Shown here piece by piece: positions 6,166 to 30,971 of a stretch of 64,000 nucleotides of DNA. The first letter of the stretch is position 1, and each line of letters begins with the position of its first letter. The position numbers and the translations under genes are program-made. Origin of the DNA: Camelus ferus (lineage: Eukaryota); contig NC_045714.1 in NCBI RefSeq assembly GCF_009834535.1, positions 16,430,001-16,494,000 of the forward strand. Direction: 5' to 3'. Below the pieces are notes generated by a model. It worked only from the letters and a program-made list of their open reading frames with translations. It did not search any database and had not been told where the DNA came from.

Positions 6166-6184
6166 GGAAGTGGCTGCTATGGGT

Positions 6185-6340: not shown

Positions 6341-6792
6341 ACCCTCATCCCAAAGCTACAATTTACCCAAACCAAATGTTTGCTGAGTGTTCTCTTTCCT
6401 ATCCCAAATAATTTCCGGCCACATTTCCAAGCGTCAACAGAATGAAGCAAGGACAATCACACAATTGTCCTCTAATGACAAGCCAACACAGACATCTCCA
6501 CCCACCCTGACCCCTGTTTTCTCATTCCCAGGGAAAATTAAGTTCAAGATTAACTCCTGTTGCAAGATGGAGTCCTGGGAACTGACATCCCCAAATAGCC
6601 TCTTGTCCTTGTGTGAGCTAGACAGCCTAAGTCTTAAGCTCACAAAGGATCCTCCCTGAGTTCTTACTCAGCTCAGGCTCAGCCAGAATCTCAGCCACGG
6701 AGGCTCGGGGCTGGGCCCGTGGGTGAAGGCCAAGTTCCTGCCAGGGCTGGGGCCTGTTTCCCTTGGTGACTGCGCACCGGGGTTTTAAATCA

Positions 6793-6935
6793 GCAATTTC
6801 CAAAGTGTAGTCCTGGGACCAGCAGCAGCAGCGGAAATGCCAGCTGAGAACTTTGTTGGGAATGACAATTCTTGGGCCCTGAGCAGCCCTGCTGAATGAG
6901 AAGGTCTGGGATGGTTCCAATAACCTGCATTAAAC
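6793..6935 (+). mobile_element. MER5A-like hAT DNA transposon relic
   Basis: cagcaatttccaaagtgtagtcctgggaccagcagca...ctgctgaatgagaa matches the remembered MER5A consensus. Confidence 0.65.
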
Positions 6936-8312: not shown

Positions 8313-8640
8313 TGTATCGGTCAGGGTTCGCCACAGAAGTAGAGTCGATAATGTGCATATATATACAAAATAACGTAGGTGTGAAATAATGTATGTGTGG
8401 AATATATATGTGAAGTAACACATATATGAAAAGATACATGTGAACTAAGGTGTGCGTACATTATGTTAAGGAGTTGTCTTGTGTGACTGTCGAGCCTGGC
8501 AAGTCTGGAGGCCGCCAGGAGGGCCAGCAGGGCGCACCCCAGCGGGACCTACGTCACCACGTTGAGGCAGAACCCTCTTCCTCCCGGGGACCTGCTTTCC
8601 TCTGCAGGCCCGGCCCAGCTGGACGCGGCCCACCCCGTGT
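8313..8640. mobile_element. MLT2-like (ERVL) LTR relic
   Basis: tgtatcggtcagggttcgccacaga...(AT-rich)...gcctggcaagtctggagg; end approximate. Confidence 0.5.
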
Positions 8641-10219
8641 TCTCGAGGGTCAGCTCCTTACTTAAGGTTGACTGGGTGCAGCTGTGACTCACGTCTGCAC
8701 AGCACCTTTGCAGCGACGTCCAGACCAGTGTCTGGCCAGCAGCTGGACCCCACGGCCTAGTCAAGGGGACACACAGGCTCGAACTTTCATAGTTGACTTT
8801 CTTCTTTTGTGGTTTTTTCCTTCCTCTGTTTCTGTTTTGAAAGCTAACCTGAAGGACGTTTTCCAGAATTCTCCTCTTTCTACTTGGTTTCCCCAAGAAA
8901 CCTGACTGTAGGCACAGAAGGTCCTGAGCACAGGCCCTCGCGGTGCCTTCCTGGCCTCCAGCTTCGCGGCGATAAAGCGGAGAAGACAACGAATTACATT
9001 CAGAATCAGAGCAAGGAGCAGGCGACATCAGCAAGACCGCTGCTCTGAGCCGCACCGCCGACTGGCCGTGCTGGGGGCACCCACCTGGGCCGCAGGTTCC
9101 CCTTTTGGAACAAGAGCTGTGGCTGGGCTGGCCCTTGTGGTTCTTCCTGTGACTGCAAGACGTCCTGAGCCGTAACCATCAGGAAACATTGGAAGAGACA
9201 AGGTTTATTGCTCACAGATCCTGGATGGTGCAGGGCGCAGCTTGGCAGGTAGAGAGAGAACGCTAGGCTGGGGTTCTGCTTTTATTGAGATGGAGGCTGG
9301 GGGCCTAGGGTTTCACAGGGTCACCCTTTACTGATGAATTTAAAACACAAGAGTGCGAATTAAAGCTCAGGAAGAAAAATGGGGCGAGGGTGGAGTGGCC
9401 AAATGGCCAGTTATCTAAATCAGCTGAAGACCCCTAAGACGAAGGAGCCCGGCGCTGGCGGGGGCAGGGAGGACCGGCTCCTGGTCTAGCCACGTGGCCG
9501 GCAACGCGTTTATCCAAGAAAGCCACCTTTGAAACAGACGCCTCTCCAAGCAAAGCTTAGGCCAGGCACGTGCATCATGAAAGGAAAAGCCAGCTATGAA
9601 GGGTTACGGTACAACTCCCCGGAGTTCAGGGGAAGGACTTCAACGGCCTGGGTGCTGGTACATTGTAATGAAGAAATTACGCATCTAAATGGGGCTAGAG
9701 TGGCAGATCCTGTAATAATTACGCAGGCAAAGATCTGAAATCCAGTTCACAGCCACTGCCCCAAACCTGAAGCGTCCAGCCCTAAAATGGCTCGCTGATC
9801 TCGGCGGCCGTGGGAATCTGGTCAGAAGTTTGGGTGACGCTGTGAGACGTTGTAACGCCCTGGGCCACCCGGTCCAACCCGTCCTGAGTTGACAGGTTGC
9901 TCCACATCTCACTGAACCAGTGATGCAAGTTTGAGAACACAGGAGTTCAGTGAAGGGTTGTGTCTCATCTTGGGAGGCAGTGATGCAACACCCGAAGTTA
10001 GGCCTGAAAGGTGTAAGTTTTTGCATCAGGTGTTTAATAAGAAGCATTTCTATGGAAACAAAAGAAAAACAAGAGTTGATGGTTGGAGCGGACGATAAAC
10101 ACAGTCTGAGCCCTGAGCTGGCCAGTCCAGGGGATTTCCAGATGTCCACGCATCTTCCCGTGGAGTGAGGGCAGAACCGCCAGACAGACAGAGCACAGCG
10201 AGTGAAGTGGCACCAGTTA

Positions 10220-11035
10220 GTCCTTATCCGCCAGTGATCACTTTACAAAAGCGGATTAAACTCACCCATCAAAACACTAGAATGACTGAATGGATAAAAA
10301 AGCAAGACCCAACCGCACGCTGTCTACAGGAGACTCCCCGTGGACTCAAGGACACACACAGGCTGAACGTGAGGAGCTGGAAAAACGTATTCTGCACAAA
10401 TAGGAACCAAAGGCAGCAGGGGAAGCTGTCTTTACCTCAGACAAAATAGACTTCAAGTCAAAACTGTCACAGGAAACAAAGCGTCATTACATAACGATGA
10501 AAGTGACATTGCAACAGGGAGAAACAACAATTATAAACATATAGACATCCAACCTCAAAGCACCTCAACACGTGCAGCGGACGGAGAAACAGACAGCAAC
10601 GCGATGACAGGTGGAGACTTCAATATCCTGCCTCCAAGGCATCCAGGAAGAGCGTTTGTAAGGAAAGAGCAGGTGTGAACACTGTAGACCCAATAGACTT
10701 CGCGAGCGTATACAGAACATCCCGCCCAACCGCGGCAGGGCTCGCATTCTTCTGAGCACACAGGGAGCTTTCTGAGGACAGATCACAGGCCAGGGCACAA
10801 AATAAGTCTTGACAAGTGTAAGATAATTAAAATCATTCCAGGTATTATTTCTGACCACAAAGGAATAAAACAAGCAATCAATTTCTTAGGAAATCATGGA
10901 AACGCACAAATGCATGGAAATTAAACAACACATTCTTCAACAATCCTTGGGTCAAAGAAGAAATCAAAACAGAAATTAGAAAATCTCTTTTAAGACAAAT
11001 GAAAACAAAAACAGATACCAAAACCTAAGTTCTTG
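10220..11035 (+). mobile_element. L1 ORF2 endonuclease-region relic (degenerate)
   Basis: Translates to ...RMTEWIKKQDPTARCLQET...LNVRSWKNVF, typical of the ORF2p endonuclease; multiple frameshifts. Confidence 0.85.
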
Positions 11036-11173
11036 TCTTTAGAAAATACGCTGAAGTAGTTAGGGGTGTAGACACAGTAATACAACGAATGTAAAAAGGG
11101 GAAATGGTATTGGAAATGCGTCCAAATGGTAATGATTGTGAGTCTGGGTACACGGGACTTCCTGTGCTAGGTT

Positions 11174-11837
11174 TGATACAGGAAAAACAGATGTGGGGCA
11201 AGAGGAGGGCCGTGTCCCATGTCTCGGTGGAGCCCCTGAGACGTGCCCCACCAAGTGTGGGTCCTTGGCTTCGTGCAGGAAAGAATTCAGGAGCGAGCCA
11301 CAGTTGAGTGAAGGTAGATTTATTTAGAGAGATAACATAGTGTATGGAGTGCAGGCTGTTCCAGAAGGCGAGAGAAAGGCCACGAGGTGCAGGGTTGGGT
11401 GCTCAGGTTAAAGTAAAAGTAGGTGCACACGCCATAGACAGAGCGCGGGCTGTCTCCAAAGAGGAGGGAGGGAGAGAGGCGGCCACGAGGTGTGGTGTTG
11501 CCAGTTCCTATGGGCTCCAGAGCTTCACATGCTAACGAGTGGGAGGACCATTCCCACTGCCCTGGGGAAGGGGCTGGGATTCCCAGGAATTGGGCCACAG
11601 CCCACTCTTTGACCTTTTATGATTAGCTTTGCCACCGTCATGGCGCCTGTGGGCATGCTACTCACCATGCTAGTATGTTGCAATGAGCGTAAAGTGAAGC
11701 TCGAGGTGTCCTGGAAGTCAATCTCCTGCCATCTTGATCCTCAAGGCCGACTGGGAGTTGACCCTTCCACCACTTCGGTGTTAATGGCTGCGTCATTCCT
11801 TGAATGGCTGTGCCCTGCCCCCTTCCCTCCTGTCTCA
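11174..11837 (-). mobile_element. Solo LTR (ERV1-like) with a 4-bp target-site duplication, inserted into an L1 3' end
   Basis: TG...CA termini; GGTT at 11170-11173 and 11838-11841; AATAAA on the minus strand at 11319-11324. The flanks rejoin into an L1 tail (gggacttcctgtgctaggtt|tacaacttctctgtaagttctaaattgtagcaaataaaa). Confidence 0.8.
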
Positions 11838-14800
11838 GGTTTACAACTTCTCTGTAAGTTCTAAATTGTAGCAAATAAAAGTTTAAGGGAAAAACAAGAT
11901 CAGAGAAAGAACCAAAGACCTCATGACCCACGCGACCATGCCCAGCTGCCAGGGGACTGGGAGCCAGTGTCCAAGCAGGTGGTCACGTCACGTGCCAAAC
12001 CGCAGCTCCAGAGGTGTGTCATTCAAGAAAAGAGAACAGATACACAGCAAGAGAGAGCACTGGCTCCAACTGTTATCCACACAAGTAAAAAACTGAGTTT
12101 CTCCGCTTGTTATGTTCTGTAAGTTATACTTCTCTGGCCGTGAAATTAACAGAACTGACCTTACTCAGATGAGAAGTACACCCCCCCCCTCACGTGGCCG
12201 CAGAACCAGGGAGGAGACCGCCGCCTGCAGGAGACAGCTTCCTGCTCTCGTCAGTCCTGGGCCCACCTCCTGGGAGAGTCACAGCCTCCTGAGAAGGCCG
12301 TCTTCGCAGGGCCCCCCTCCCACCTCCTCCGCCTGGCAGTACCGTCCCCCCAAAACCTTGGCGGAGCCCAGCAGGGAGCAGCTGGCAGAACGGAAGAGAA
12401 GGCCGTCACTGGCGACCTGGAAATGTGGTCGCTGCACCTTGTTCTAAATACATCTCCCCATTTAAGCTTCCACCTGGCGTGTGTGCAAATGGTTTCCACC
12501 TTTTAATAGCTCTGTTCTCTCTTTACATCTGTGTGTAAGAGAGAGGAAGAGGGACACCCTGGTGGGCTAGACCCTTCACTTGCCTTGGAGAGGCGAGAGA
12601 CATAACGTCTCACAGAAATGCGGGCGCAGGAATTTGGGGAGGTGTGAGCAGTGCCCAGAGGGTGGCTGAGTGGAGTCAGGTGGAGACTGACTGGCAGGGC
12701 AGACCAGGTGCGGAGCCACAGCCCGTCTTCCCAGGTGCACGTCTAAGCCCACGGCGGGACGGGGCGGCTCCGGGCCGAGCGCACTCTCCCTGGGGCTAAA
12801 TTTGGCGCCCTGAGCTCTCAGTTGAGGGGTCCGCTGGTTGCTGAGAGGTTTCTGTTTGGTTGGTTGGGATGTTTCAGCGCCGGGAAAAGTGAACGCTACT
12901 GTGATTTCAGCTTTTTTCCCGAAGCGATCTTGCAATCTCATGAGACGGGGCAACGTGCAAGCTCTAAGGGAGGATGTCCGGGGAGAGGGAGGGGCGCAGA
13001 GGCCAGGGTGGCGGGAGCCTGAGGGCAGGGCCTGCCACCCCAGGGTCTGCCTGCGAAGCCCAGGCCTTGCGCTCTTGGACACACGCTGGTGAACGAAGCT
13101 CTCCCAGGGTTAGCCGAGACTGTTTCGTTGGAAAATCTAAAGATAAATGCCACAAACCTCTCTCTGAGTGACTCCTGGGTGTCCCTGGGCACCGTCCTTT
13201 CCTTCCGCACTGCTCCTCGCTGGATGCCCTGTGGAGGACACCCCACGGAGGAGGGCCTCCCCTCAGCCCGGCCCCCCCTGCCCCACCCCATCACTCTGAG
13301 GTCCCACAGCTTCTCCCTGCGTTCACGGGGATGCAAAAAGCTGAGAAGCACTGTTTTACTTTTTTCTAAAGGACTTCAGTACTGACAGAAAGTGCAGATG
13401 CTCTTGAGATTAAGTCCCTATCTGCTCCAAGCGCCGTCCGGGCTCTGGGAGCCGGTCCTCATGTTCCAGCTCTCCCAGGGTCTCCCTGTGGCTGGTCTGG
13501 TCACAGGCTTGCCCTGCTGACCCGAAGTGGGCAACTACCAGACGGACAACGTCGGCTCTCCGCTGTGCCAGGGCCAGGGGCCCACGCACCCCCGCCTCCG
13601 ACGGTACACACACATCTCAGTACCGCCGAGGGCCACCTTTGACCTCGACCCCCTGTATGTGGACAGCAGAGAAGATCCCGAGGCTAGTTCCTTAGCCTGA
13701 AGTCACAGGGCGGGTGGGGAGGCTGGAGAAGGACGTCGGCTTGGTCCTAGAACAGCTGACATGCCTGGAAAAGTTAAATAGATGGAAAATGGACTGAGTC
13801 AGATGTTATTCCCCCAAAGGGAGGGTCATCTCTGCACTGAGTTTCCTGTGCGATGTTTTCAGAGGAAGCGCCCGTGTTGGGCATCTGTGGCTGATCTCCA
13901 AACACCACCAGCTGAGGAAGTGGAAATTTGGCTGAGTTGATGGAAACTTGCTCAGGAGACCCGAAATGGACTCTGAACGGAGTCGTCCCAAGGAGAAAGC
14001 GGGCACCGTCCATGCCGGGGAAGCAGTGAAGGCAAAAAGGACAGGCCTGTCACTGGCTGCGTCTAGAGAGACCAGTCTGAAAAGAGCAGCGGCAAGCCTG
14101 ACCAGAGCATCAGAATGACCGTCGGGGGCTCCGTGCGCAGTGAGAGAGCACCTGGAGGGGGGCAGATCCAGACACCTGTGCAGAAGGGCTCCCGCGACAT
14201 GGGCCGCAGAGGTGGAGGGAGGTGCCTGGCCCGGAAGTTCCCAGGCCCGGGGATAGTGGGCAGCTCCCTCTGATTTCATCCCAGAGGAGAACAGGGGCCC
14301 AGGAATGGGGGGAGGTGCCGGGAGCCAACGGCTGCCCACGACCCACGTGGGAACTTGACCTGAGATCACATGCAGGAGGAGGGGAGGGGCTGGGAAAGCT
14401 GGGGATGGTGCTGGGTTCCCAGCTGCGAGGGCAGGACACAGGGACTTGACCCCAAGCTTCCCAACACTTGGAATTTGAAACTGGGGGGGCAAGTTTGGTT
14501 ATCAGAGCCTTTCAAAGAGGCAGCCATCCTCCAGGATTCTCCAGGATGAGTTTTCCTGAGCTCCTCCCGCCCTCTCCTGGGCCACGCTGTGAGGATCCAT
14601 GCTGTTCACAGGCCTCCAAACCTTCCCTCAGGGGTGAATGTACGGACATCACTTCGAATGTGCAGGGGCCTGGCCTCGGGATGGGGAGGCCACAGACACT
14701 GGCAGGAGAGACCCGTTTTTCAGGCTCCTCCAGTGACAAAGCGAGGGGCCTCTGTGGGCTCTGCTGGCCTGGCGGGACACTTGCCATCCATCCAGGGGTC

Positions 14801-17222
14801 TCAGGACTTATGAATGCCTCCGCTGCCTGGTCCCCCTGGAAATCCACCAAGACGTGCCTACAATTGCTGACAACCCCAACCTGCCTCCAGACTTGCATGT
14901 TGATTCTCCAGCTAAAAGTCATGCTGCTTGCGCTTCCGTTTCAGTTTTAAGAGCTTAAATCCGGCTGAGAAGAGACAGGCTATTGTGCGGTTTTTGTCTG
15001 GTTAAACCACTTTATGGAAACACGCTTGGCATACAACCGATGTCTACACTTAAGTGTCGGGAGACTAGGGCGCATCAGACCAACCTACGCAATCTAGGCC
15101 GTCGACTGCTCGCCGCCCCCACGGGGCGCCTGCCCGCTCGGGGTTTAGCAGTTGCTTCTCTTTCCTGGCAACAGCACACACCACGGACCCCCCAGCTCGG
15201 GTTCAAGTGCACGGAAGGCCTGCTGTCGCACAGTCTGTGCCCAGAAAGTGCTTGTCTTGTAGCTAAAGCTTTGTCCCTTCTGACCAACATCACCCACTCC
15301 CCTCCCTCAAGCCCTGGGAGACCCCCCCCCCCCCCCGCTTTCTGCTTCTGTGACTTTGACGACTTTGATTTCCTCCTTAAAATGGAGCCACGCAGAGTTC
15401 TGTCCCACGTCTGGCCTCTAGCGCCGCCACGTGGGGGCGACCTCCTTCTGCTCTGAGGTGGCTCACTCGTCCACAGATGCAGCTCTCGGCAGTCTCCCTG
15501 CACAGCTTCCTCCTTCTCACACGTGACTCCCGTCTCCCTTGTTCCCTGCAAACGGCAACTTGCAACATGACAGCCTTGGGCCAGGACTGAGTCCTGTACT
15601 TGGAGACCGGGGAACAGTGACCATGGCACTTGACCAAAAAGTCTCCCTTTCTTTAAAGATAAGAGGCTGGGGGCTCATTTCCCTGGGAACAGGCAGCCAA
15701 GATCTCAGGGGAGGAGGAGCTGTGAGCACACAGTGGGCATCGTGAATGTAGGGACCCCGCGAGCGGGAAGGTGAGGCAGTGTCAGAGCTTCCCCCCAACC
15801 CCAGGAAGCCCCCGGCTGTGAGCGAGTCTGTGCAGGGACAGGCTGGCAGGTTCACAGCAACCCCTCTCCCCACACAGGCCCCACCTGCTCACGGACACCT
15901 GGCTTCTGGACACCCACCTTTTTCTCTCTCACCAGCATGGTGTTCTGACCCCTCCCCTGAGCCGGTGCAGCCCCCAGACCATCCTCCAGCCCCAAGTCCC
16001 CAGCCCACGTGGGGTGGATTTCTCACTGTGGCTCCACTGCATCCAGGCCCGGGGGCCCTGAACCGAGCTGCTCAAAGTGTGGTCCAGAGGCAGGAGCGGC
16101 AATGGCCCCGGGAACGGGCTAGGGTGCGGATGCCCAGGGCCTGCCCAGACTGGGGTCAGAATCCCACAGGGCCGGGGAGGCCCAGGAGCAGGGCACCCAC
16201 AGGCCTTTGGGGGACTCCGGTCCCCTCTGAAGGTCTCAAGGAGCTGGGAACAGAGGCTAAAGGCCTATGTCAGGGCACAGAGCTGAGGCCTGGATTGGAA
16301 AGAGTGTGTTGTGGGGTCATCCCAGAGCTGCCTGAGCCGCCCTAGTGGGAGGCTGGGAAGGTCTCTTCTGCAGAAACAGACTCTGCACAGGAAGCAGTGT
16401 CCTCTGTGCCGTGTCCTCTGTCTCCCGTGGACACAGCTCAGCCTCCCTGAGCACGCTGGGTCCACCCCCGACCCCCGCCTCTCTGCTCCTCCTACACTCA
16501 CGCTTCCTCCCCTAACGACACCTCAACAAAAGGGGCGTGGGAGGCCACCGTGGGTCGGTGGAGGGGGCGTGGCCATCACACAGCAAGGTTGACCACCCCG
16601 GAGCGGAGTGGGGGCGGGAAGGGAGACGCAGGGGCTGGCCGGCAGCTCCGGGGCCCAGGAGTGTCCAGGACCTGCACGTCCTCTGACCTGGCGCCAGCCC
16701 AGGGGCCACGAGCCTCACTGCTCCACAACTCGGGGGGTTGGGGGCCACGTGGGACGAGGCCACGCCCGCACCTGTCAGGACCCTGGCCCCTGCTGCCTTC
16801 TTAGCATGAATGCCCTCGACGTCTGGGCAGGCGCCTCTGCCGCCCTCAAAGCCGGCCCTCGGCAACCCTCTCCTCTGTGGCCCTGTCCCTCCTCGTCCCG
16901 CTGACCCTCACCCACTGCTGTGCCCACGGACCACCTTCCTCCGAAACCTCTCGCGACTGAGTCCTCGATTCGGAGTCTCGGTCTGGGGCCTCCAGGCAAG
17001 CCTCCCTCCCCCGGAGGGGTCCAGGGGTGCCTGCACTGGGCTTCCGCTGCAGCGGGCCCTCCTCCACGGCCGGCCCCTCCCGCCCCCGCCTGGCTCCTGT
17101 GTCTCTGCCCTGGGCCCGCGGGAGCTCTATCAGCTTCGGAAGGAGGAGGCAGGGTCACAGGAGGGAAGACACAGGGTGCAACGCCAGAGGGAGGCCCAGC
17201 GGAGGAGTGCGTCCTGGAGCAG

Positions 17223-19227
17223 ATGGACTGGACCGAGGCCCAGGCAGGCAGGGTGGGAGCCGGAGTGGGGAAGGCGGGAGGCACGGGAGCCCGGCCGCCC
17301 ACAGCCACGCAGCGCCGGCGGGGCAGGTGGAGGTGGGCTCGGCCCTGGGCCCTGCTCCTGCTTCTCCTGGGTCCCCAGCTCCTGGAGGCGCGCGGCTGGG
17401 GTCTCCAGAGGGAAGTGAGCGCGGAGGACCAGAGGGTGCTGGAAAGGTACTTACCTGCCACCGTGGAGTACGCCGTACACGAGTTCAACCTGAGGAGCCA
17501 GGACGAGAACGCCTACAAGGTGAAGCGTGTCCTGAGGTCCTGGAGGGAGCCGGTGGGTACCACGCGCCCGCCCCGCCGGCCGGCACCTGCTCTCGCGGGA
17601 GGCCGGGGGAGGGTCCCGTCGGGCCGTCCTCTTCCCCACCCGAAGCCCGTAAAGCAGAGGGGAAATGCAGTCTGTTCAGTCGCTCTCAGTTCCTATCAAA
17701 GGAGTAACTTGGAAACTTTTAGCGCCTCAGTCCATCAACTCACACGTAAGGTGTGTCTTCAGTTTTCGTCATCTCTGGACGTGGTTTAATGAAGAATGAC
17801 CAAAATATGGCCGATGAGGGGATGAAGGTATTTAGTTAAAAAAAAAAGAAAAACCTCAGGGAGTATTGGATTCGATAGATTCAGAAAATATTTCAAGGAA
17901 ATAACAGTAAAGTGGGTTAATTCAGAAAGAGAGAGACAGAGACGCCCAGACATGCACGGAGGGAGGGAGGAGGCCGGGGCCTGGAGGGGTGGGGGCAGGC
18001 CGCAGGGTCCCCTGGCCCTGAGGACCCCTGCGAGGTCACGGCCTCTCCTCTGACCCCACCTGCTCTGGGCGCCTTCCGGGTCTCCGCCCACGCAGGCTGA
18101 GTGTGACTTACACTCTTCCGGACCTTGGTTCTTAATCCTAAACTGTTCTCCTGGCCGTGGGGTCTCTGCAGAGTGCCAGCAGGGGTGTGATTTCCACGTG
18201 GGCTGCAGACGCCAACACTGAGACCCTCGGCTGGAGGAGCACGTCTGGCCTGTGTGCGCTTGTGAGTGTGTGTGTGCGTGTGTGTGTGCACGTGTGTGCG
18301 TGTGTGTAGCCGTAGCGCCGAGCGGCATTTTCCTGCCGTGGGGCAGGTGAAAGCGTGACATGGGGCGTGAGGGTGAGCCCCCCTTTCTCAGAACAGACTG
18401 ACCCAGCAAACTTGCGGAGCCGGCACCCCCGGCCCGGCCCGGCCCGGCCCGCCCTCCCGCTCTGCGGGGACCTGCTGTGCCTGCCACCCGCGGGCAGGAG
18501 GGACGCCCTCACCTCGGTGTCTCCCCGACCACAGGTGGACACCGCCATGGTGTTCTCCACGGAGCTGCAGCTCACCCGCACCAGGTGTGGGAAGTTTGAC
18601 GAAGACATTGACAACTGTCCGTTTCAAGGACGTCCGGACGTGAACAACGTAAGAGACGCACCAGCCGCCCTCGGGTGACACGGGGTGAATGCCAGCCCCG
18701 GGGGCGGGGCTGTGGCAGTGATGACAGCGCCGCTCCTAGAGACACAGGGGGGTGACCGGCACCCTGCCCCGCGGAACTCCCGCTCCTGCTCCAGCTGACA
18801 AGGGGCTGAACCCCGCCCCAGGACAAGCCCCGCAGGGTCGAGGCCCCCGGGAGACAGCAGGTGTGCAGGGAGACTCCCAATGGGGCGCTGGGGGCTTGGT
18901 CCCACTGGGACAGCCTCTGGGGACCACAGGCCTGGCGGGGAAAGAAGGACACAGGCGCCCTGGGGTCAGGAGCGAGTCCCAGGTCGGGGGCATCCACGAC
19001 CGAGGGCAGGAGCCTGCACCCCCTGCCGCCCCCGCCCCCAGGAGTGCAAAGTTGTGTGGGTGCTGGGCTTAGAGCCAGAGCCACCAGCTTCCCAAGGCCC
19101 CTCCACCCACGCTCCCTCCCCTGCGTTTCCCCCGCAGACCGTCACCTGCCTCTTCACCATCAGCACTGAACCCTGGAGAACAGTGTTTGAGCTCCTGAAC
19201 AACACGTGCTCAGAGGGGCTCCTCTGA
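17223..19227 (+). CDS. CST9L: CST9/CST9L-like (testatin-like) cystatin, copy 1. Exons 17223 (or ACG 17307)-17552, 18535-18648, 19138-19227
   Basis: Reads WALLLLLLG...RYLPATVEYAVHEFN...AYKV...SWRE | [31 protein letters not shown] | TVTCLFTISTEPWRTVFELLNNTCSEGLL*, with GT-AG introns. Closest remembered match is CST9L; the start codon is ambiguous. Confidence 0.8.
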
Positions 19228-19408
19228 GGGAGACCACGGCCCCGCCTGGCCTCTGCTGTCCTGCCCCTGGCCACCAGCGAGGCCTGTTGTGGCCCTCTGG
19301 TGGCGGAGCAGCTCCGGTTCTGTTCCTTCACGAGCAGGTGTCTGGGGGGGGTCGCATCCGGGCGAGGTGGAAATTGCTCCCTGTCCATTTCCCCCCGTAG
19401 AATCGGCC

Positions 19409-19414
19409 ATTAAA
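19409..19414 (+). terminator. ATTAAA polyadenylation signal, CST9-like copy 1 (mirror copy at 21931-21936 on -)
   Basis: Hexamer about 180 nt after the stop, present in both arms. Confidence 0.6.
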
Positions 19415-21823
19415 CACCAGCATTTCCGGCAGCCTGTGCCGCCTGGTCCGGAGGGCGGGGGCCGGGCAGGGAAGGCGTCCTCCTGCCAGGGCTGCCGCTG
19501 GCCTAGGGGCGGGTCTGCTCCGCCCTGGACACCTGAGACAGCTGCAGGTGACACCACTTAGCAAGCGCAGGTGGTCTGATCTCCATCTCTGGGCTCACGT
19601 GATGGCCTGGTCCTCAGGGCGGCATCGCCATGACCTGACGGGAGCCCAGGGCCGACGCGCCTCTGGCCCTCAGTGCCTGCCTTGGGGGGCCTGCTCACAT
19701 CTGCCCAGGTCCAGCAGGGCGCTCGGGGCAGCGGGAGGACATGGAGGGCCCAGCCTCCGGCATCAGCAGTGGCTCCTGGGGCCCCTTTAGAAGCATGCAG
19801 CTCGGGGACTCTGCACCTGCGACGAGGACCCGGGCCCTTGGGACAATTCGACTTGTGAGGCACTGCGGCTGCTGCTGCCCCAGAGGCCCCGCCCCTCCCC
19901 CAGAATGCCACCTGGCCAACTCGCCTGGCCCTGCGGCCTGGCTCTCAACACCCCCACCCCCGCCAGGCTGTGTCTGGAAACACCGCGGACAACGTGGACT
20001 GAAGCGGGAGTGGGCACGTTCCAGGAAGACCTCACTCCCACGCAGGGTCTCCCTGGTGGAGGGGTCAGGTCACATGGTGTGAGGACGCCTGGTCGCATCC
20101 TCCACAGGCACCGGATGGCTTCCCAGGCCTGTGACTGCAGCGGAGCTGAGGGGAGCCCGGTGCGGGGTCCTCGCTGCTGGCCGGGCACCACTGGGTGTGA
20201 GCACAGCCGTGCTCCTGTCCCTCTGCCACCTGTGCCCGGACTGGGCCGGCTGCTCTGGAAGACAGCCCACCCCTCCTTTGCTTCCTCTCTGGCCCTTCCT
20301 GACCTGTGGCTCTTCCAAGAGAAGGAAGCTTAGAGGTCCTTTACCCTCCGTGATTCCTGTCCAGTGTCCGGGGAGCCCTCTGCTGTCCTGTTCCTGGCCA
20401 CCCGGGTCCGCCGAGGGTTTTGTCAGTGTGGATGACGAGGGTGCCCGTGAGGGACGCTGAGTGGGGCCTAGGGCACTGTGTGTGCACGTGGTGCTCCCTT
20501 CCCCAGGGAAGGGGGAGAGCACGGCGGTGTCTGAGCCCTGAGGGGGTGGGGAGGAAGCGGGATGCCAGCTGACACCCGGGGCTTAGCGCCTCCCCTGCCC
20601 ACTGGCTGACCCTCTCTGCGCCGGGCGCTGGGCCAAACCTCAGGGTTAGCCCCGCTCCGCCACGGGCCAGTCCTGACCCTCCTCTGTGCCCCGAGCCTTC
20701 GGCACCTACAGGCCCACTCTCCACACAGGGAGAGCATGGGCCATGCCTTTCCTGAAAGCTGCTGTGAGGGACAAAATCCAGGGTCACGGAGGGGAGGTGC
20801 TGCAGCACGGCCACGTCCCCCTTTGGGTTGGAGCTTCTCGGTGCTCCTCCTCCGTCCTCATCTCTGCCGTGGGTCCCCTGGGACCTGGCACACACGCCAT
20901 CTCCCACCGTGTCTGGACCTCGGCCACAGCCTTGGGACAAGTTAAGGTGGGGCCCAGCGGTGCCACGGAGATGGAGGCCGTGTGGAGACCCCAGGAGTGC
21001 TTCCCCACCGTGACTGTCAAAGTGACCCTGAGCATTGGCCAGGGGAGGAACCCCAGAAGGAGAGTGCAAGGGAACAGGCCTCGAGCAGGTGGGTGCCTGG
21101 AGCCCTAGACACGGGCATAGCCCCCGGAACTGAAGGAGGCGGTCCCTCCTCCTCCAGGCTGTCCACTTGGGTCACCCTGAAGTATCTCCCCATCATGGGG
21201 ACTCGTGGGACCCATCCGCCCCATGCAGTGTGGGCCCCCCTGAGGCTGGGTCAGCACCTTGTGTCCCTTTGGAGCCCCCCCACACACGGGGTGTCCAAGT
21301 CAGATTCCCTTGCTCGTTAGCACCCGGCAGGCATACGTGTCCCCAGTAACCAGACGTCACCACCAAGTGTTGAAATCTACGGCTCCATAGACATGCCTTC
21401 TCGTGACGATTCCCTCACTCACGTCACTAGTCAAATGGCACCCGGAAGCGTGTGTGTAGCCGTGGCGGCGGAGCACTGGTCCGGCCATGAACAGCGCATC
21501 CCGGTGACGGCGTGAGAGGCTCCATCCGTCGCAGATTCCAACCCTCAACCCCCATCAGAACATCACCAAGGAGCTGGAATATTTGGGAGAACAGCTGGTG
21601 CAGTTACAGGGACACCCGCGCTCCCCAGGCCCCTCGGGCAGAGCCGACGTCAAGAAGACCGAACATGATACAGGACAAAGGAGGGGGAGGCCGAGAACTA
21701 GACAGCGTCACAGTTTCCGGTCAACACCTGCACCCAACATTCAGTGACTGTTTCCTAATGATGATGATAATCAGGAAATCAAGCGTTAAACTGTAAAAAT
21801 GCTTCTCTGGCCGAGAGGAAGGG

Positions 21824-24800
21824 GGAGCGGACCCGCCCCTAGGCCAGCGGCAGCCCTGGCGGGAGGACGCCTTCCCTGCCCGGCCCCCGCCCTCCGGACC
21901 AGGCGGCACAGGCTGCCGGAAATGCTGGTGTTTAATGGCCGATTCTACGGGGGGAAATGGACAGGGAGCAATTTCCACCTCGCCCGGATGCGACCCCCCC
22001 CAGACACCTGCTCGTGAAGGAACAGAACCGGAGCTGCTCCGCCACCAGAGGGCCACAACAGGCCTCGCTGGTGGCCAGGGGCAGGACAGCAGAGGCCAGG
22101 CGGGGCCGTGGTCTCCCTCAGAGGAGCCCCTCTGAGCACGTGTTGTTCAGGAGCTCAAACACTGTTCTCCAGGGTTCAGTGCTGATGGTGAAGAGGCAGG
22201 TGACGGTCTGCGGGGGAAACGCAGGGGAGGGAGCGTGGGTGGAGGGGCCTTGGGAAGCTGGTGGCTCTGGCTCTAAGCCCAGCACCCACACAACTTTGCA
22301 CTCCTGGGGGCGGGGGCGGCAGGGGGTGCAGGCTCCTGCCCTCGGTCGTGGATGCCCCCGACCTGGGACTCGCTCCTGACCCCAGGGCGCCTGTGTCCTT
22401 CTTTCCCCGCCAGGCCTGTGGTCCCCAGAGGCTGTCCCAGTGGGACCAAGCCCCCAGCGCCCCATTGGGAGTCTCCCTGCACACCTGCTGTCTCCCGGGG
22501 GCCTCGACCCTGCGGGGCTTGTCCTGGGGCGGGGTTCAGCCCCTTGTCAGCTGGAGCAGGAGCGGGAGTTCCGCGGGGCAGGGTGCCGGTCACCCCCCTG
22601 TGTCTCTAGGAGCGGCGCTGTCATCACTGCCACAGCCCCGCCCCCGGGGCGGCATTCACCCCGTGTCACCCGAGGGCGGCTGGTGCGTCTCTTACGTTGT
22701 TCACGTCCGGACGTCCTTGAAACGGACAGTTGTCAATGTCTTCGTCAAACTTCCCACACCTGGTGCGGGTGAGCTGCAGCTCCGTGGAGAACACCATGGC
22801 GGTGTCCACCTGTGGTCGGGGAGACACCGAGGTGAGGGCGTCCCTCCTGCCCGCGGGTGGCAGGCACAGCAGGTCCCCGCAGAGCGGGAGGGCGGGCCGG
22901 GCCGGGGGTGCCGGCTCCGCAAGTTTGCTGGGTCAGTCCGTTCTGAGAAAGGGGGGCTCACCCTCACGCCCCATGTCACGCTTTCAGCTGCCCCACGGCA
23001 GGAAAATGCCGCTCGGCGCTACGGCTACACACACGCACACACGTGCACACACACACACACACTCACGCACACACTCACACACGCACACACACACTCACAA
23101 GCGCACACAGGCCAGACGTGCTCCTCCAGCCGAGGGTCTCAGTGTTGGCGTCTGCAGCCCACGTGGAAATCGCACCCCTGCTGGCACTCTGCAGAGACCC
23201 CACGGCCAGGAGAACAGTTTAGGATTAAGAACCAAGGTCCGGAAGAGTGTAAGTCACACTCAGCCTGCGTGGGCGGAGACCCGGAAGGCGCCCAGAGCAG
23301 GTGGGGTCAGAGGAGAGGCCGTGACCTCGCAGGGGTCCTCAGGGCCAGGGGACCCTGCGGCCTGCCCCCACCCCTCCAGGCCCCGGCCTCCTCCCTCCCT
23401 CCGTGCATGTCTGGGCGTCTCTGTCTCTCTCTTTCTGAATTAACCCACTTTACTGTTATTTCCTTGAAATATTTTCTGAATCTATCGAATCCAATACTCC
23501 CTGAGGTTTTTCTTTTTTTTTTAACTAAATACCTTCATCCCCTCATCGGCCATATTTTGGTCATTCTTCATTAAACCACGTCCAGAGATGACGAAAACTG
23601 AAGACACACCTTACGTGTGAGTTGATGGACTGAGGCGCTAAAAGTTTCCAAGTTACTCCTTTGATAGGAACTGAGAGCGACTGAACAGACTGCATTTCCC
23701 CTCTGCTTCACGGGCTTCGGGTGGGGAAGAGGACGGCCCGACGGGACCCTCCCCCGGCCTCCCGCGAGAGCAGGTGCAGGCCGGCGGGGCGGGCGCGTGG
23801 TACCCACCGGCTCCCTCCAGGACCTCAGGACACGCTTCACCTTGTAGGCGTTCTCGTCCTGGCTCCTCAGGTTGAACTCGTGTACGGCGTACTCCACGGT
23901 GGCAGGTAAGTACCTTTCCAGCACCCTCTGGTCCTCCGCGCTCACTTCCCTCTGGAGACCCCAGCCGCGCGCCTCCAGGAGCTGGGGACCCAGGAGAAGC
24001 AGGAGCAGGGCCCAGGGCCGAGCCCACCTCCACCTGCCCCGCCGGCGCTGCGTGGCTGTGGGCGGCCGGGCTCCCGTGCCTCCCGCCTTCCCCACTCCGG
24101 CTCCCACCCTGCCTGCCTGGGCCTCGGTCCAGTCCATCTGCTCCAGGACGCACTCCTCCGCTGGGCCTCCCTCTGGCGTTGCACCCTGTGTCTTCCCTCC
24201 TGTGACCCTGCCTCCTCCTTCCGAAGCTGATAGAGCTCCCGCGGGCCCAGGGCAGAGACACAGGAGCCAGGCGGGGGCGGGAGGGGCCGGCCGTGGAGGA
24301 GGGCCCGCTGCAGCGGAAGCCCAGCGCAGGCGCCCCTGGACCCCTCCGGGGGAGGGAGGCTTGCCTGGAGGCCCCAGACCGAGACTCCGAATCGAGGACT
24401 CAGTCGCGAGAGGTTTCGGAGGAAGGTGGTCCGTGGGCACAGCAGTGGGTGAGGGTCAGCGGGACGAGGAGGGACAGGGCCGCAGAGGAGGGGTTGCCGA
24501 GGGCCGGCTTTGAGGGCGGCAGAGGCGCCTGCCCAGACGTCGAGGGCATTCATGCTAAGAAGGCAGCAGGGGCCGGGGTCCTGACAGGTGCGGGCGTGGC
24601 CTCGTCCCACTTGGCCCCCAACCCCCCGAGTTGTGGAGCAGTGAGGCTCGTGGCCCCTGGGCTGGCGCCAGGTCAGAGGACGTGCAGGTCCTGGACACTC
24701 CTGGGCCCCGGAGCTGCCGGCCAGCCCCTGCGTCTCCCTTCCCGCCCCCACTCCGCTCCGGGGTGGTCAACCTTGCTGTGTGATGGCCACGCCCCCTCCA

Positions 24801-25557
24801 CCGACCCACGGTGGCCTCCCACGCCCCTTTTGTTGGGGTGTCGTTAGGGGAGGAAGCGTGAGTGTAGGAGGAGCAGAGAGGCGGGGGTCGGGGGTGGACC
24901 CAGCGTGCTCAGGGAGGCTGAGCTGTGTCCACGGGAGACAGAGGACACGGCACAGAGGACACTGCTTCCTGTGCAGAGTCTGTTTCTGCAGAAGACACCT
25001 TCCCAGCCTCCCACTGGGGCGGCTCAGGCAGCTCTGGGATGACCCCACAACACACTCTTTCCAATCCAGGCCTCAGCTCTGTGCCCTGACATAGGCCTTT
25101 AGCCTCTGTTCCCGGCTCCTTGAGACCTTCAGAGGGGACCGGAGTCCCCCAGAGGCCTGTGGGTGCCCTGCTCCTGGGCCTCCCCGGCCCTGCGGGATTC
25201 TGACCCCAGTCTGGGCAGGCCCTGGGCATCCGCACCCTAGCCCGTTCCCGGGGCCATTGCCGCTCCTGCCTCTGGACCACACTTTGAGCAGCTCGGTTCA
25301 GGGCCCCCGGGCCTGGATGCAGTGGAGCCACAGTGAGAAATCCACCCCACGTGGGCTGGGGACTTGGGGCTGGAGGATGGTCTGGGGGCTGCACCGGCTC
25401 AGGGGAGGGGTCAGAACACCATGCTGGTGAGAGAGAAAAAGGTGGGTGTCCAGAAGCCAGGTGTCCGCGAGCAGGTGGGGCCTGTGTGGGGAGAGGGGTT
25501 GCTGTGAACCTGCCAGCCTGTCCCTGCACAGACTCGCTCACAGCCGGGGGCTTCCTG
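21824..25557 (-). repeat. Right arm of the 3.7 kb inverted segmental duplication
   Basis: Reverse complement of 15802-19521; paired coordinates sum to about 41345-41360. Confidence 0.97.
22118..24137 (-). CDS. CST9L: CST9/CST9L-like cystatin, copy 2 (inverted). Exons 24137-23808, 22809-22696, 22207-22118
   Basis: Same predicted protein and splice sites as copy 1. Confidence 0.8.
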
Positions 25558-25570
25558 CCCTGAAAAGTCA

Positions 25571-25765
25571 TTCTTTTTTTTAAATTGACGTATAGTTGCT
25601 TTACAATGCTGTGTTAGTTTCCGGTGTGCAGCACAGTGATTCAGTTACCCATGTACATATACGTTCTTTTGCAGATTCTTTTCCATTATAGGTCATCATA
25701 AAACACCGGGTACAGCTCCCTGTGCCGCACAGTAGGTCCTTGTGTGTACTTTATGTATAGAAGTG
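25571..25765 (-). mobile_element. L1 3' end (artiodactyl-type), minus strand
   Basis: ttttttttaaattgacgtatagttgctttacaatgctgtgttagtttcc...cagtaggtccttg. Confidence 0.8.
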
Positions 25766-26194
25766 TGTTGAGGGCAAAAGTCGTCTTTTTAGTTAGTCAA
25801 TGCCCAGGAACTGCTGTTGGAACCTGTCTAATTGCAGCGACTCCAAGGAGCAGCCACACTCCTGGGTGTCATACCTTGCTGTGTCCCCGACCCCACCCAC
25901 CCAGAACTAAGCCAGGTGACCGGTAACACAAAGAGGAGCTGGTGGGGCACCTAAAGCCGGGGCACAAAGGGCGCTGTGTCTTCCAGCTGGTCTCTCAGGC
26001 CTGTGTCTGGAGGAACCAGGCAACACACGCAGCCCCCGGCCGCCCCCGGAGGGGCCACACGGAGGAGAACAGAGACCGCCTGCCAGCAGCCACACCGCCC
26101 TGCAGCCGTGAGAGCGAGCCAGCCTGCAAGTGGGCTCCCCGGAGCCAAACTCACCTTCTGATGGGTCGGTGCCCTCAGAGTCTGAGTCTGCCAC

Positions 26195-27067
26195 CTCGGG
26201 AGAGGTGACCCCAGCCAAGCCGCCGCAGGGCCCTGGCCCGCAGACCCCGCAGAGACACAAGAAATGGCTTAAGCAGCAAGGGCAAGGCGACCAGTCACGC
26301 AGCACTGGATTATACCTCCCACTGTGTGCGCACAGGTACACGCAGACACACGCAGACACACGCACACACACACACGCAGCCTACTTGCCAGGTACCATCG
26401 CTCTGGCAAATTTCTGCCTCATTTCAAAACCAAAAGTACAACACAAGTCTGCAAATGACCCAGCTGTCTCCCAGCTTGGATTTGGGGTTTAAACCTCTGT
26501 CTGCAGCCGCGTGAGCTCCTGTGTCCCGGGCAGGGAGCTGTCTGGAAACCCACGGATGGACATTCCCACACGACCGCACCCTCGGAGCCTCGCAGAAATT
26601 ACCCACCACGTAAAGGCAGCACGGCTCCGCCTCCTCGCGCGGAGAACGCACAAAAAGGCAAAAGGCTACAGGAGGGAAGCCAGCATGTCAGCCGTGTTAT
26701 TTCAACGTTCTCAGGCGTCTGTGCTTCTCCGGAGGGACGTCAGGGCGCAGGACGCGCCGGAGGGCTAGACGGGTCGGCATTCCTTCTTCAGCAGCTTGAG
26801 TTCAAAGTTCCAGGGTTTGGACGCAACAATAAAGGTGCAATAAAACATCTAAAAGAGACAAAAAGGATAATAAGCTTGTAAGAAAAAGTGAAACAAAACC
26901 CACAGTCAAAAAAGCCCCAGAAATGTGTATTTCCAGGAGCGGGGATCTGGCTTCAGGCGGCTAAGAGGCTTCCTGAGCCGGCCGCGCCCTGCAGAGCCCT
27001 GAGCCGTCTCCGCGGGGTCTGTGGGCCAGGGCCCTGCGGGGGCTTGGCTGAGGTCACCTCTCCTGAG
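26195..27067. repeat. 62-bp imperfect inverted repeat pair (26195-26256 and 27006-27067)
   Basis: ctcgggagaggtgacc...ccccgcagagac versus gtctccgcggggtc...ggtcacctctcctgag, with about 5 mismatches. Confidence 0.85.
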
Positions 27068-30000
27068 GAGCCCGCCTTGCCACCAGGAGGAGCCCTCGGC
27101 AGTTCACGTCCCCATGATCTGAAGCCATCGCTGATGTGGGAAGAACAAGATTTGGAGCCCAGGGACTAATCATTCTCAAGAAATCCTCATGCCCAGCTGC
27201 AGCCCTCCTCCGGCCACACGGAGACCCCGTGCTGAGCGGAGGGCCCAGCTGTCCTCCCCGGGGGAGGCGGCACCACAGAAGAGTCAGGGTCCTGCATGCC
27301 TGGGAAAGGGGCCACGTCTGGCTGGGGACCACCATGAAAAGCTTGCCCTGGAGAGCTGGGGGGTTACACAGGGAGCCCTTTCCAGGGCCTGTGGAATGAA
27401 GGGGTTCAGGTTTCCGGCGTGGATGACTCGCCGTGTCCCTCCTCTCTCCCGATATCTTTATTCAGTTAGAATAAAAATACAAAGAATTCTTTCTTTTGAA
27501 CTCCATTGCATCAGCGGAAGCACGAGTGACAGCATCAAGCAGATACGAAGTTGTGTGAGGTTCAGTTTGAGTGGGAAACAGGACCAAGCTACCACAACCC
27601 AGAGCTGCCGCGGAGGAACTGAGGCCGGCCTGGGGGGCGTCCGGGCAGAGGGGGCATCCAGGATGGGTTGAGATGGTTCCTGGCAGCGGTGGGAGGGGTG
27701 GGGAGGGGAGAGAGTGGGCTTATCAGAGGGTCAACTTTTTCCTTAACTTCTGGATCAACCAACATAGAAAGCAACCCAGGCACCAGGGAGGGAGGAGCCC
27801 AGCGGTAGAGCACGTGCTTAGCACCATGCACTAGGTCCCGGGCTCCATCCCTGGGACCTCCATTTAAAACCAAATTTAAATAAGTAAGCCTAATTACCTA
27901 CCCCCCACCAGAAAAAAAAAAAAAAAAAAAAAAAAGAAAGCAAGCCCAGCTATTGAGAGCAATCCTAGGGGACATTTTAGTGAATATATAAAAATCTTCA
28001 AGAAGTTAAAAGAAATATTGGATGAGTAATTCAGCGTCTGGGAATTTGCCCACAAGGCAACAACAACCAGATACACACACAGACAGAAATAAGGAAGAAT
28101 ATTCATTAGGACACGCTCGCAACGGCTAAAAATGAGAAAAATGTGAATAATTCGCCGGGATCGACTGAATACTACGTGTAAACGTTAAATGAAGTCAACT
28201 AGTTCCGCTACAGAGTGCCCTCAGATAATTTTACAGTTTGGGAAATCCTTAGATTTTATTATCAAATAAGCATCTAAATTGTGGAACGGTGCACAGTGTG
28301 ATCCCAACTACACAATAACCCAAATACAAAATACAGGAAAACTTGGCTACGTGACAAGCCGACAGGGGTAACCTTTACACAAGCGTCTTTCTAGTTGATT
28401 TTAAGCCACTTAAGTCTTCTGAAAATGCCCAGCTTTTCTACCTGAAGTGAATCAGGCCTGTAACTGTCTAAAACAATATCAAGTTTTAAGATTTGTTTTC
28501 CAAGGAGCTCAGATATTCACCCTTTCTTCCTTTCTAGGTCTCAGTAAAAAACTAGAGAAAGCAAATATGCTCGAATGCACAGGAGCTCTGGCACGGGGAC
28601 ACGGGGACCCGCAGGCGTCCTGAGACCCACCCACGGCAGAGGCAGGGAGGCGTCTCCGCAGGACAGGAAGGCATGTCGAGCTGGGCAAGCGAGGTCTGCT
28701 GGGTGCCATCTGAGCACCTACCTTCTGCATCTGGGGGTCCTGCTGCTCTGAGCAGTTCTCATGTTCTCCTGAAACTTTCTTGCATGTTGTCCTGACAATC
28801 TTGGCTTCAATAAGGTAATCCAAGCTATCCGTGATCTGCCCGAGAGTAATTTAAGGTTAGACCTCATAAAAGCGCACGTGGTGTCCGTGATCAAGTGGAT
28901 AAACAAACATGCCATCCCTGCTCAGCGCAGAGGCTGTTTCTCCCTCCCTCCCTCCTACGGCTGTTTTTTTTTTTGTCAGAGTTTTGGGCTGGTCGTACCT
29001 CGATCTCTCTGTTTCTCAGTCTCTCTTGTATTTAAAGTCTCTGCTGAGAGTGTATCGCTTCTCCCTGAAGCTTTGGCAGTTTTGATAATCCACCATAATT
29101 CCACGTGGAACACCCCCCAAATCCCTGACTTTCCGCATCTTCCCACACCCGCAGCCCTAGGGGCCCACCTCCATTCAGGGAGGGCCCCTGTTCTGGCCTC
29201 TTTGAACCTGTTTCTCCTTGATTCTTTCGCATCCTTATCTGCATTCAAGGCTGGCAGAGCAGACAAATAAAATGTACGTTCATGAAAAGAACAAGCAAAC
29301 AGTATGAAATGAGACCTAAGTTTTGGGACATGTGGGTCTCTGGTTTGTTTTATTACTGAATCCCTGTCTATGAGGCAGAACCCACCATTTCTGTTTGATA
29401 AATGGGGAGCACAGGGAAGGAGAAGTCCCGGGAAGCGGGCCGGTCCTGGGAGGGGGGAGCCTCACGAGGAACGGGTGCCACGCTGACACCCATGACGTCC
29501 GAACTCGGCAGGTGACCACTGCCTGCGGACACGAACGACAGAGCCGGGGCTGCACGGAGGACCGGGGGAGCCCGGGACCCACCGCGTAGAGGGGGTGAGG
29601 CTGCCGGTGTCCGGCCTCTTGTGGGGTGGAGGCATCGCCTGCACCTTCCGACCACACAAAAAGGCAGGAAACGGGCAGGTTGGCGGTGACGGGAGGGCAG
29701 AGATGCAGGTCGGGCCAGGGTCACCTACAACGCGGGCTCCCCCCACACCTCGGGCTCCAGCAGACCGGCCCGCCCCCCAGCTCCGGCCCCTGCGAAAACC
29801 ACAGGACAGCTCTTCCTCAGGAAACACAGCGTTGGTTCAACGTGCTCTTCTAAGACACAGTCCATGTTCAGACCCCTCCCGCTGTCCTCACATCAGCCTT
29901 TCCAGCATTATTTTAAATCCAAGAGGCAATACAGAACCACCCCCGGCAGTTATCCCCCCTTGTTTCCTAAGCCCCCCTGAATGGAGAAATGTCCCCTGCT

Positions 30001-30971
30001 CCCCTGTCTCACGACACTAATACTTTCGTCGGGCTCGGAGACGCTAACTGCCCTCGTGATTACCGTCGGGGGTGCGTCTGGGGTGCCCTTCCAGTGACGC
30101 CACATCGGAGGCGCGTGACGTTCAGTTTGCCCCGGTGTTGGTACGGGCCTTCGGGGAGCGAGGCCCCCGGGCATCCTGGCTGTAATTACTCAACAGGGAC
30201 TCCCTGCGGGGGTTCTCCCTCCCACGCTGTCCTCGCGGGGGGAGGGTCACTGCTGGCCTCTGCCTGAGCCCCTCGTGACCTTGGTGGTTGCCAAAGGTGA
30301 TGTTCGAGTTTCATGCTCGTTCACAGCTGTAAGCAGGCACTTTGCTATAAAGAAGAGCTTGCCCTTCAGCCCCAGTTCCTTTTTCAGTGAAAGCTGGATG
30401 TGGAGTTTGTTTGCTGGTTTACTGTGTCACAAGGCACCCCCGCCCACACCACCCCTGTGAATGAGGTCCGTTCAAACTCTCCCAAAAATGACCCCCCCAA
30501 GAGCCCTTCTAGGCCCTCACCTGCGCCTTCTGATGTGACGGTGGCCAATTCTAAGTTATCTTAATGGATGTGCTGTATTTTACCCCAGAATTGTACGGGA
30601 GGAGATTTAATTGATTTTCTTCCCCAGTCCCCTAGAATAAAGTTCACATACTTTGGCTCAGGGCCTCTCTCAGCTGCTCCCCACGGCAGCGGGCCTGCCT
30701 CTACCGCAGGCCCGGAGACAGAGGGGGAGCCAAAGCCACCAACCTGCTCCTGGGACTTCAGGATCTCCACCACCTTGAAGGCGAACTTGTCTGAGCTGGC
30801 TTTGTTGTACTCCTTCATGGCGAACCACACAGCCTGCTGCACGTACACGTAGGACTTCGGGATGTCTTGGAACTTCCTCACCACCTTCGGCGTGCCCCAG
30901 GCGTGGACAGCACTGGACGCCAGGGCCACAGTGGCCACCAGGAGCAGCAGGCTGGGGCAGAGCCTGGCCAT
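26765..30971 (-). CDS. CST13: Cystatin 13 (cystatin T-like), 141 aa. Exons 30971-30744, 28835-28722, 26848-26765
   Basis: Reads MARLCPSLLLL...AWGTPKVVRKFQDIPKSYVYVQQAVWFAMKEYNKAS...LKSQEQ | ITDSLDYLIEAKIVRTTCKK...QQDPQMQK | MFYCTFIVASKPWNFELKLLKKECRPV*. Canonical GT-AG sites, intact frame, strong resemblance to mouse Cst13. Confidence 0.93.
27784..27935 (+). mobile_element. tRNA-derived SINE with poly-A tail
   Basis: gggagggaggagcccagcggtagagcacgtgcttagc...taagtaagcctaattacc...A(n). Confidence 0.8.

Follow-up and report, generated by a model that had tools for sequence, protein, structure and literature searches.

A camelid palindrome with a cystatin-9-type gene in each arm, and the concerted evolution of its arms

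The sex-chromosome palindromes of primates and mouse, among them P1-P8 of the human Y and the conserved palindromes of the X (PMC8327919; PMC3723533), are built of inverted arms that are more than 99% identical and enclose a unique spacer. Well-documented palindromes that last across species through conversion between their arms are almost all sex-chromosomal, and the authors of the primate X study, in which the spacer was inverted between species in about 50% of the palindromes, have called for autosomal examples (PMC8327919). Here we describe an inverted repeat of the same design in a window of 64,000 nucleotides of Camelus ferus (RefSeq GCF_009834535.1, contig NC_045714.1, positions 16,430,001 to 16,494,000 of the forward strand), with a gene of the cystatin-9 (CST9/CST9L) type in each arm. 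No description of a CST9/CST9L palindrome was found in the literature searched. We put the probability at roughly 0.9 that this is a genuine autosomal palindrome within the type-2 cystatin cluster, that its arms undergo gene conversion, and that it was shared before the Camelus-Vicugna split.

Palindrome structure and concerted evolution of the arms

An inverted-repeat search, self-BLAST and global alignment agreed on two arms of ~3.72 kb each around a unique spacer of ~2.3 kb (Table 1), as a preliminary description made from the letters of the window had proposed. The two arms were joined by one BLAST alignment of 3751 columns with 19 mismatches and 5 gap openings; the length differences comprised 1 bp, a 26-bp GT microsatellite, a 10-bp CCCGG repeat, another 1 bp and edge effects. 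The resulting identity is 99.5% over 3.7 kb, which cannot have arisen by chance. The spacer occurs only once within the 64-kb window, and an Rfam scan of 14000-27500, spacer included, gave no family match.

The window matches GCA_009834535.1 of C. ferus (BCGSAC_Cfer_1.0) with 100% identity. The comparison took in four species and five assemblies (C. ferus, C. bactrianus, two of C. dromedarius, and Vicugna pacos), which had been produced with different technologies, and the palindrome was present with the same outer and inner boundaries in all five. The arms differ at 7 sites in C. bactrianus GCA_048773025.1, at 2 sites and 1 indel in the haplotype-resolved dromedary assembly mCamDro1.pat (HiFi and OmniC), and at 16 sites and 3 indels in V. 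pacos GCA_048564905.1. The second dromedary assembly, CamDro3, also carries the palindrome. The arms of the window diverge by 0.5%, a level comparable to heterozygosity, as might be seen if two haplotypes of one gene had been mis-joined as an inverted duplication or if a fold-back chimera had formed, and CamDro3 does hold an artefactual, 100%-identical extra arm next to a gap of 1000 N. Such an origin of the window palindrome is nevertheless extremely improbable. The identical boundaries and the 2.3-kb unique spacer recur in all four species and all five assemblies, one of which is HiFi-based and haplotype-resolved, no gap or run of N lies inside the palindrome in the window, and about 150 lineage-specific changes are present in both copies of the Vicugna arms. 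The mis-joined haplotypes that the preliminary description had named as its refutation, and assembly artefact in general, were ruled out by this replication.

The CamDro3 locus itself contains direct arm copies at 8581-12307 and 13308-17034 of the locus record, 100% identical and placed on either side of the gap (12308-13307). The extra arm is an assembly artefact, a false third gene copy that has been annotated as extra 166-aa products.

The arms evolve in concert. Within the four species, the two arms differ at 2-19 sites (identity 99.0-99.9%), whereas any Vicugna arm differs from any Camelus arm at 147-154 aligned sites (~96% identity between the genera), nearly all of these differences being found in both arms. 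In the maximum-likelihood tree of the arms, arms A and B of Vicugna grouped together (100/100), as did the six Camelus arms (100/100) and the two arms of the dromedary (89/93). At 15963, 18688, 18782, 19344 and 19354, a single species or species group has the derived state in both its arms. At 16363, 16748 and 18347, the alleles of the Bactrian lineage are found in both C. bactrianus arms and in only one C. ferus arm. A variant at 17582 is common to C. ferus and C. bactrianus and limited to arm B in both, indicating that conversion is episodic and not continuous.

Published estimates place the Camelini-Lamini split at 16-25 My. The split corresponds to more than 11 My of independent evolution (PMC13751797). 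If the arms had been independent since before it, the difference between them within a species would be expected to equal or exceed that between the genera (~4%); differences of 0.05-0.5% were seen. The preliminary description had offered a recent lineage-specific inversion-duplication as one of two explanations for the likeness of the arms. Arms alike through youth, with no conversion, would account for the high arm identity, and warthog and rhinoceros have one copy only at this position. However, the boundaries are the same in Camelus and Vicugna, and so is an insertion resembling the tail of a long interspersed nuclear element (LINE) beside arm B, which was found in both genera and not in whale or cattle. 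That four species should have acquired identical breakpoints independently is implausible. A recent duplication is therefore very unlikely and was ruled out by the Vicugna palindrome, and the other explanation offered, an older palindrome kept uniform by conversion between the arms, is the one that fits both the shared boundaries and the closer likeness of arms within species than between them.

As the mechanism of this concerted evolution, we infer arm-to-arm gene conversion. The palindrome would have existed before the Camelus-Vicugna split, and intrachromosomal recombination between the arms, resolved as non-crossover gene conversion, would repeatedly copy one arm onto the other. Such copying would leave substitutions fixed in both arms of a lineage. 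From the steady-state relation c = 2*mu/d, with mu assumed to be 1.1e-8, the conversion rate over the four species was roughly estimated at 4e-6 to 4e-5 per site per generation.

Table 1. Features of the palindrome and its surroundings in C. ferus (positions within the 64,000-nt window)
Feature	Position	Strand	Remarks
Palindrome arm A	15802-19521	+	1.42 kb upstream region, three-exon cystatin-9-type gene, 0.29 kb 3' flank
Palindrome arm B	21824-25557	-	inverted copy; adjoins cystatin-13-like gene
Unique spacer, 2302 bp	19522-21823		orientation relative to flanks varies among assemblies
Gene A exon 1	17223-17552	+	upstream ATG, 28-aa extension, signal-peptide-like core, start of cystatin domain
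Gene A exon 2	18535-18648	+	
Gene A exon 3	19138-19227	+	stop codon included
Gene B exon 1	23808-24137	-	identical to gene A exon 1
Gene B exon 2	22696-22809	-	
Gene B exon 3	22118-22207	-	stop codon included
ACG codon at ancestral start position	17307-17309	+	mirror copy in arm B at 24051-24053
ATTAAA poly(A)-signal candidate	19409-19414	+	inside arm A; mirror copy at 21931-21936
LINE-3'-end-like fragment, ~190 bp	~25580-25775	.	poly(A) and ~15 bp target-site duplication; ~20 bp outside arm B
Cystatin-13-like neighbour gene	26765-30971	-	synteny anchor, outside palindrome

Spacer orientation and the one-sided divergence of C. ferus

Crossover resolution of the recombination between the arms would flip the spacer, and opposite orientations would then be met among assemblies. 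With the flanks held in the orientation of the window, C. bactrianus and both dromedary assemblies have the spacer turned round; Vicugna aligns with the window over all 22 kb as a single co-oriented piece. The proneness to spacer inversion that had been predicted for the palindrome is thus borne out between assemblies. A substitution at 19516, 5 bp from the spacer, moves with the spacer end, as expected if the crossover took place within the arms. Past their single gene, warthog and rhinoceros continue, in the orientation of C. ferus, into the left part of the camel spacer (~19522-20358), the ancestral 3' flanking sequence of the arm-A gene. The two bear copies have between them a stretch of the spacer's right part, correspondingly placed and oriented. 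The collinearity with pig, rhinoceros and bear indicates that the orientation of C. ferus and Vicugna is ancestral and that of C. bactrianus and dromedary derived. On the species tree, two inversion events are needed, or one event together with lineage sorting.

The differences between the C. ferus arms are unevenly distributed. Among them, 13 derived states unique to C. ferus lie in arm A and 1 in arm B (binomial p = 0.002). All 13 arm-A states are changes from G/C to A/T, with 10 of the 13 being transitions at CpG, and C. bactrianus has 4 unique CpG transitions in arm A and 0 in arm B. These counts would fit a model in which germline methylation is arm-specific and arm A decays at its CpG sites. 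Such decay was however downgraded and appears quite unlikely, since the excess also covers the left flank and the spacer. When polarised with Vicugna, the C. ferus-specific changes number 10 in the left flank, 10 in arm A, 9 in the spacer, 2 in arm B and 5 in the right flank. An excess that reaches through flank and spacer and ends at arm B and the right flank is the pattern of a haplotype block. Moreover, the arm differences of Vicugna are symmetric (6 versus 7), and changes from G/C to A/T prevail in the C. bactrianus lineage too.

Site patterns were counted among C. ferus (W), C. bactrianus (B) and dromedary (D), polarised with Vicugna, in two blocks, ~12130-21823 (left flank, arm A and spacer) and 21824-29224 (arm B and right flank). 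The left block gave BD 9, WB 4 and WD 1, and the right block gave 1, 13 and 1 in the same order, which is the pattern of the species tree (Fisher p = 0.0013 between the blocks); the genealogy switches at the junction of spacer and arm B. The one-sided divergence is best explained if C. ferus arm A lies in a deep haplotype block of at least 9.7 kb, running from before 12130 to 21823. We read this as a block that for long was not overwritten by arm B, and not as evidence of an arm-specific mutational process. As a separate observation, the changes specific to C. ferus show an odd bias toward G in the left flank.

Because the genealogy of the block matches the grouping by orientation, a single old inversion that segregated through Camelus speciation, with incomplete lineage sorting, stays in play. 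In the left flank, arm A and spacer, C. bactrianus and dromedary share derived alleles and C. ferus stands on a long branch, and this allele grouping matches the common flipped orientation of the former two. The difference in orientation could also come from a mis-oriented spacer in C. ferus, as BCGSAC_Cfer_1.0 has orientation discrepancies in other duplicated regions. An old segregating inversion or a mis-oriented spacer, in place of recurrent inversion, is a serious possibility, if one that we somewhat doubt. Setting Vicugna against the HiFi dromedary assembly is by itself enough to require at least one real inversion. Moreover, C. ferus has the orientation that Vicugna, pig, rhinoceros and bear point to as ancestral, on which a spacer mis-oriented at random would hardly have landed, and the site patterns of the spacer itself are mixed (BD 3, WB 2, WD 1). 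Introgression from dromedary into domestic Bactrian as the source of their common flipped haplotype was rejected, since C. bactrianus and dromedary stand as far apart as separate species on either side (0.37% and 0.36%).

Several points weigh against a palindrome with converting arms and a flipping spacer. The arm difference of 0.5% in C. ferus is about as large as the difference among Camelus species, indicating that conversion is not frequent. No signature of GC-biased conversion was shown, with a GC content of 66% in the arms and 64% in the spacer; GC makes up 50-58% of the homologous gene regions in pig, whale, cattle and bear, and the whole camel region is GC-rich. The orientation calls are made at the level of assemblies, with one assembly per haplotype, and BCGSAC_Cfer_1.0 has been reported with differing orientation of duplicated blocks elsewhere (PMC8069558).

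The cystatin genes and the older history of the locus

The two three-exon genes are convergent, each pointing toward the spacer. In agreement with the preliminary description, each arm contains an upstream region, three exons and a poly(A) signal and encodes the same protein: the coding sequences are letter-identical (534 nt, 177 aa), all exon boundaries are AG/GT, and ATTAAA stands 182 nt past the stop codon, within the arm. By protein comparison, the 177-aa product is the annotated Camelus 'cystatin-9 isoform X1'. The Pfam Cystatin domain (PF00031) was found at residues 79-158 with 29.1 bits against a cut-off of 22.2, four cysteines lie at residues 128, 138, 152 and 172, and the PW motif is kept at residue 160. 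The QxVxG motif was looked for in the whole protein and is absent. This cysteine-protease inhibitory loop is present in classical cystatins and is not known from the CST9/CRES subgroup, so that its absence from the camelid gene is the pattern expected for that subgroup. The best protein matches were cetacean and suid 'cystatin-9-like' proteins with 71-75% identity. Judged by these features, the gene is to be classed as a type-2 cystatin of the CST9/CST9L (testatin) type. It resembles this subgroup in its cystatin domain, three exons, four conserved cysteines, PW motif, lack of QxVxG and position next to CST13, and differs from it in that the camelid copies have lost the ancestral ATG and are annotated from a camelid-specific upstream ATG. 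CST9 (testatin) has been described as expressed in testis and Sertoli cells of other mammals, and by analogy the camel arm genes are probably expressed in testis.

At the ancestral start position, all camelid copies have ACG, while whale, hippo, cattle and pig have ATG. The camelid-specific in-frame ATG lies 84 nt upstream (17223-17225; 24135-24137) and adds 28 residues; cattle have ATA and whales AGG at its position. ACG and upstream ATG are found together in both arms of Camelus and Vicugna alike, and must therefore date from the camelid stem, conversion having spread or preserved them. With the ATG replaced by ACG in all camelid copies, no signal peptide starts at the conserved codon. The hydrophobic core WALLLLLLG is kept, but at a distance of 41 residues from the annotated upstream ATG.

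Between Camelus and Vicugna, the coding sequence differs at 8 of 534 positions and the non-coding part of the arm at 142 of 3191 (Fisher p = 5e-4). All four amino-acid changes fall within residues 21-59 and the mature domain is unchanged. The identity of the mature protein in the two genera shows that it is under purifying selection. Non-coding arm sequence also diverges less (4.45%) than spacer and flanks pooled (5.85%, p = 0.003); between C. ferus and Vicugna, the spacer diverges fastest (6.4%) and the arms slowest (3.9%).

The older history of the locus was followed in whale, hippo, cattle, warthog, rhinoceros, bear and manatee. The manatee match to the spacer was too weak and was not used, and ~7858-8043 of the whale record, which behaves as a dispersed repeat, was ignored. 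Warthog and rhinoceros each carry a single gene here, and the order of segments is A-flank, gene, left part of the spacer, a 'middle' segment, B-flank and CST13. Camel arm A is collinear with this single-copy gene, its positional equivalent. Camels are without the 'middle' segment and have instead the right part of the spacer, the inverted arm B and a short flank, Bflank2. When the LINE-tail insertion is skipped, the junction of Bflank2 and arm corresponds by homology, give or take a few bases, to the boundary found upstream of the 'G1' copy of whale, hippo and cattle and of bear CST9, and the junction of A-flank and arm has its homologue at a truncated third copy of the whale. Since whale, cattle, hippo and bear have the outer junction of arm B in common, both this junction and the second gene predate Camelidae. 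The preliminary description had taken the minus copy for the derived one. This stands insofar as warthog and rhinoceros have only the copy collinear with arm A, but the arm-B copy is not recent. Arm B may come from a CST9-type paralogue or from an older inverted duplication.

An additional head-to-head copy was found in whale, hippo and cattle. The hippo (Hippopotamus) locus is a head-to-head CST9-like palindrome with ~4.2-kb arms of 96.8% identity and a spacer of ~7 kb (record 1006-5265 / 15775-12194). The right whale (Eubalaena) has two head-to-head copies and the truncated third copy, which is inverted (record 3786-6836, 9513-12762 and 13160-14775), and cattle are similar. In the polar bear (Ursus maritimus), CST9 and a CST9L-like gene form a convergent inverted pair (record 9586-14218 / 22522-17671), with identity rising from 72% at the outer ends to 88% near the centre, where the piece homologous to the camel spacer is found. 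From these sequence comparisons, the CST9 region is a site of recurrent inverted duplication in artiodactyls. By such duplication the locus has been remodelled again and again within Fereuungulata, the almost perfect homogenisation of the gene pair being found in camelids. In the protein tree, all artiodactyl copies fall in one clade, which is uninformative on CST9 versus CST9L orthology because conversion can produce the same pattern.

A further-reaching history can be put forward tentatively, although we consider it rather improbable as a whole. The arms would be descendants of two ancient paralogues, one of CST9L type with the flanks seen in warthog and rhinoceros, the other of CST9 type with the 5' flank of bear CST9 and whale G1, which were brought tail-to-tail and fully homogenised in camelids. 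Conversion would then have erased tens of My of paralogue divergence in promoter, introns and exons and spread the replacement of the start codon, and the spacer orientations would perhaps have been kept as a haplotype-linked polymorphism through Camelus speciation.

Concerning the surroundings, the same CST13-adjacent neighbourhood is found in warthog, whale, hippo and rhinoceros, and the window contains further cystatin genes at ~44.7-47.7 kb, 49.1-51 kb and 56.6-59.1 kb. A direct repeat of 862 bp and 99% identity (44543-45404 / 48860-49719), immediately beside a run of N at 44171-44466, takes in the last exon of two cystatin genes that adjoin each other on the minus strand. It may have come about by recent tandem duplication, by conversion or through the assembly.

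Comparison with known palindromes

The camelid locus is useful in several respects. The palindrome is small enough for single long reads to span it, and at least four camelid species show graded homogenisation (2, 7, 16 and 19 differences) and both spacer orientations, offering a tractable natural system for the autosomal conversion rate, tract length and inversion frequency. It also illustrates that a changed start codon can be brought by conversion into each of the two copies of a gene of the reproductive tract. For annotators, CamDro3 gives a warning with its false third copy, and a shared spacer orientation among camel assemblies should not be assumed.

Beyond the design of arms and spacer, the palindrome resembles those of the sex chromosomes in arm conversion and concerted evolution, in a spacer that flips between species, in being orthologous across species, and in selection that preserves its genes. 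Its cargo likewise belongs to a reproductive-tract gene family. On the other hand, it is autosomal, its arms of 3.7 kb compare with more than 8-10 kb and up to megabases, the arm identity is lower and more variable (99.5-99.95%), and each arm holds a single small gene. The conversion rate of Y palindromes has been estimated at 2.2e-4, and the camel rate implied by the arm identity is roughly 5-50 times lower.

A second relative is the eutherian X, for which Caceres et al., cited in PMC8327919, reportedly described in 2007 a recurrent inversion of FLNA-EMD between inverted repeats. There, too, inverted repeats of kilobase scale are said to have been kept for long by concerted evolution while the intervening segment flipped in different mammals. 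The repeats of FLNA-EMD flank functional single-copy genes, whereas the camel genes lie inside the repeats. Set beside these systems, the camelid locus is a compact autosomal example, conserved across genera, of a process known mainly from sex chromosomes.

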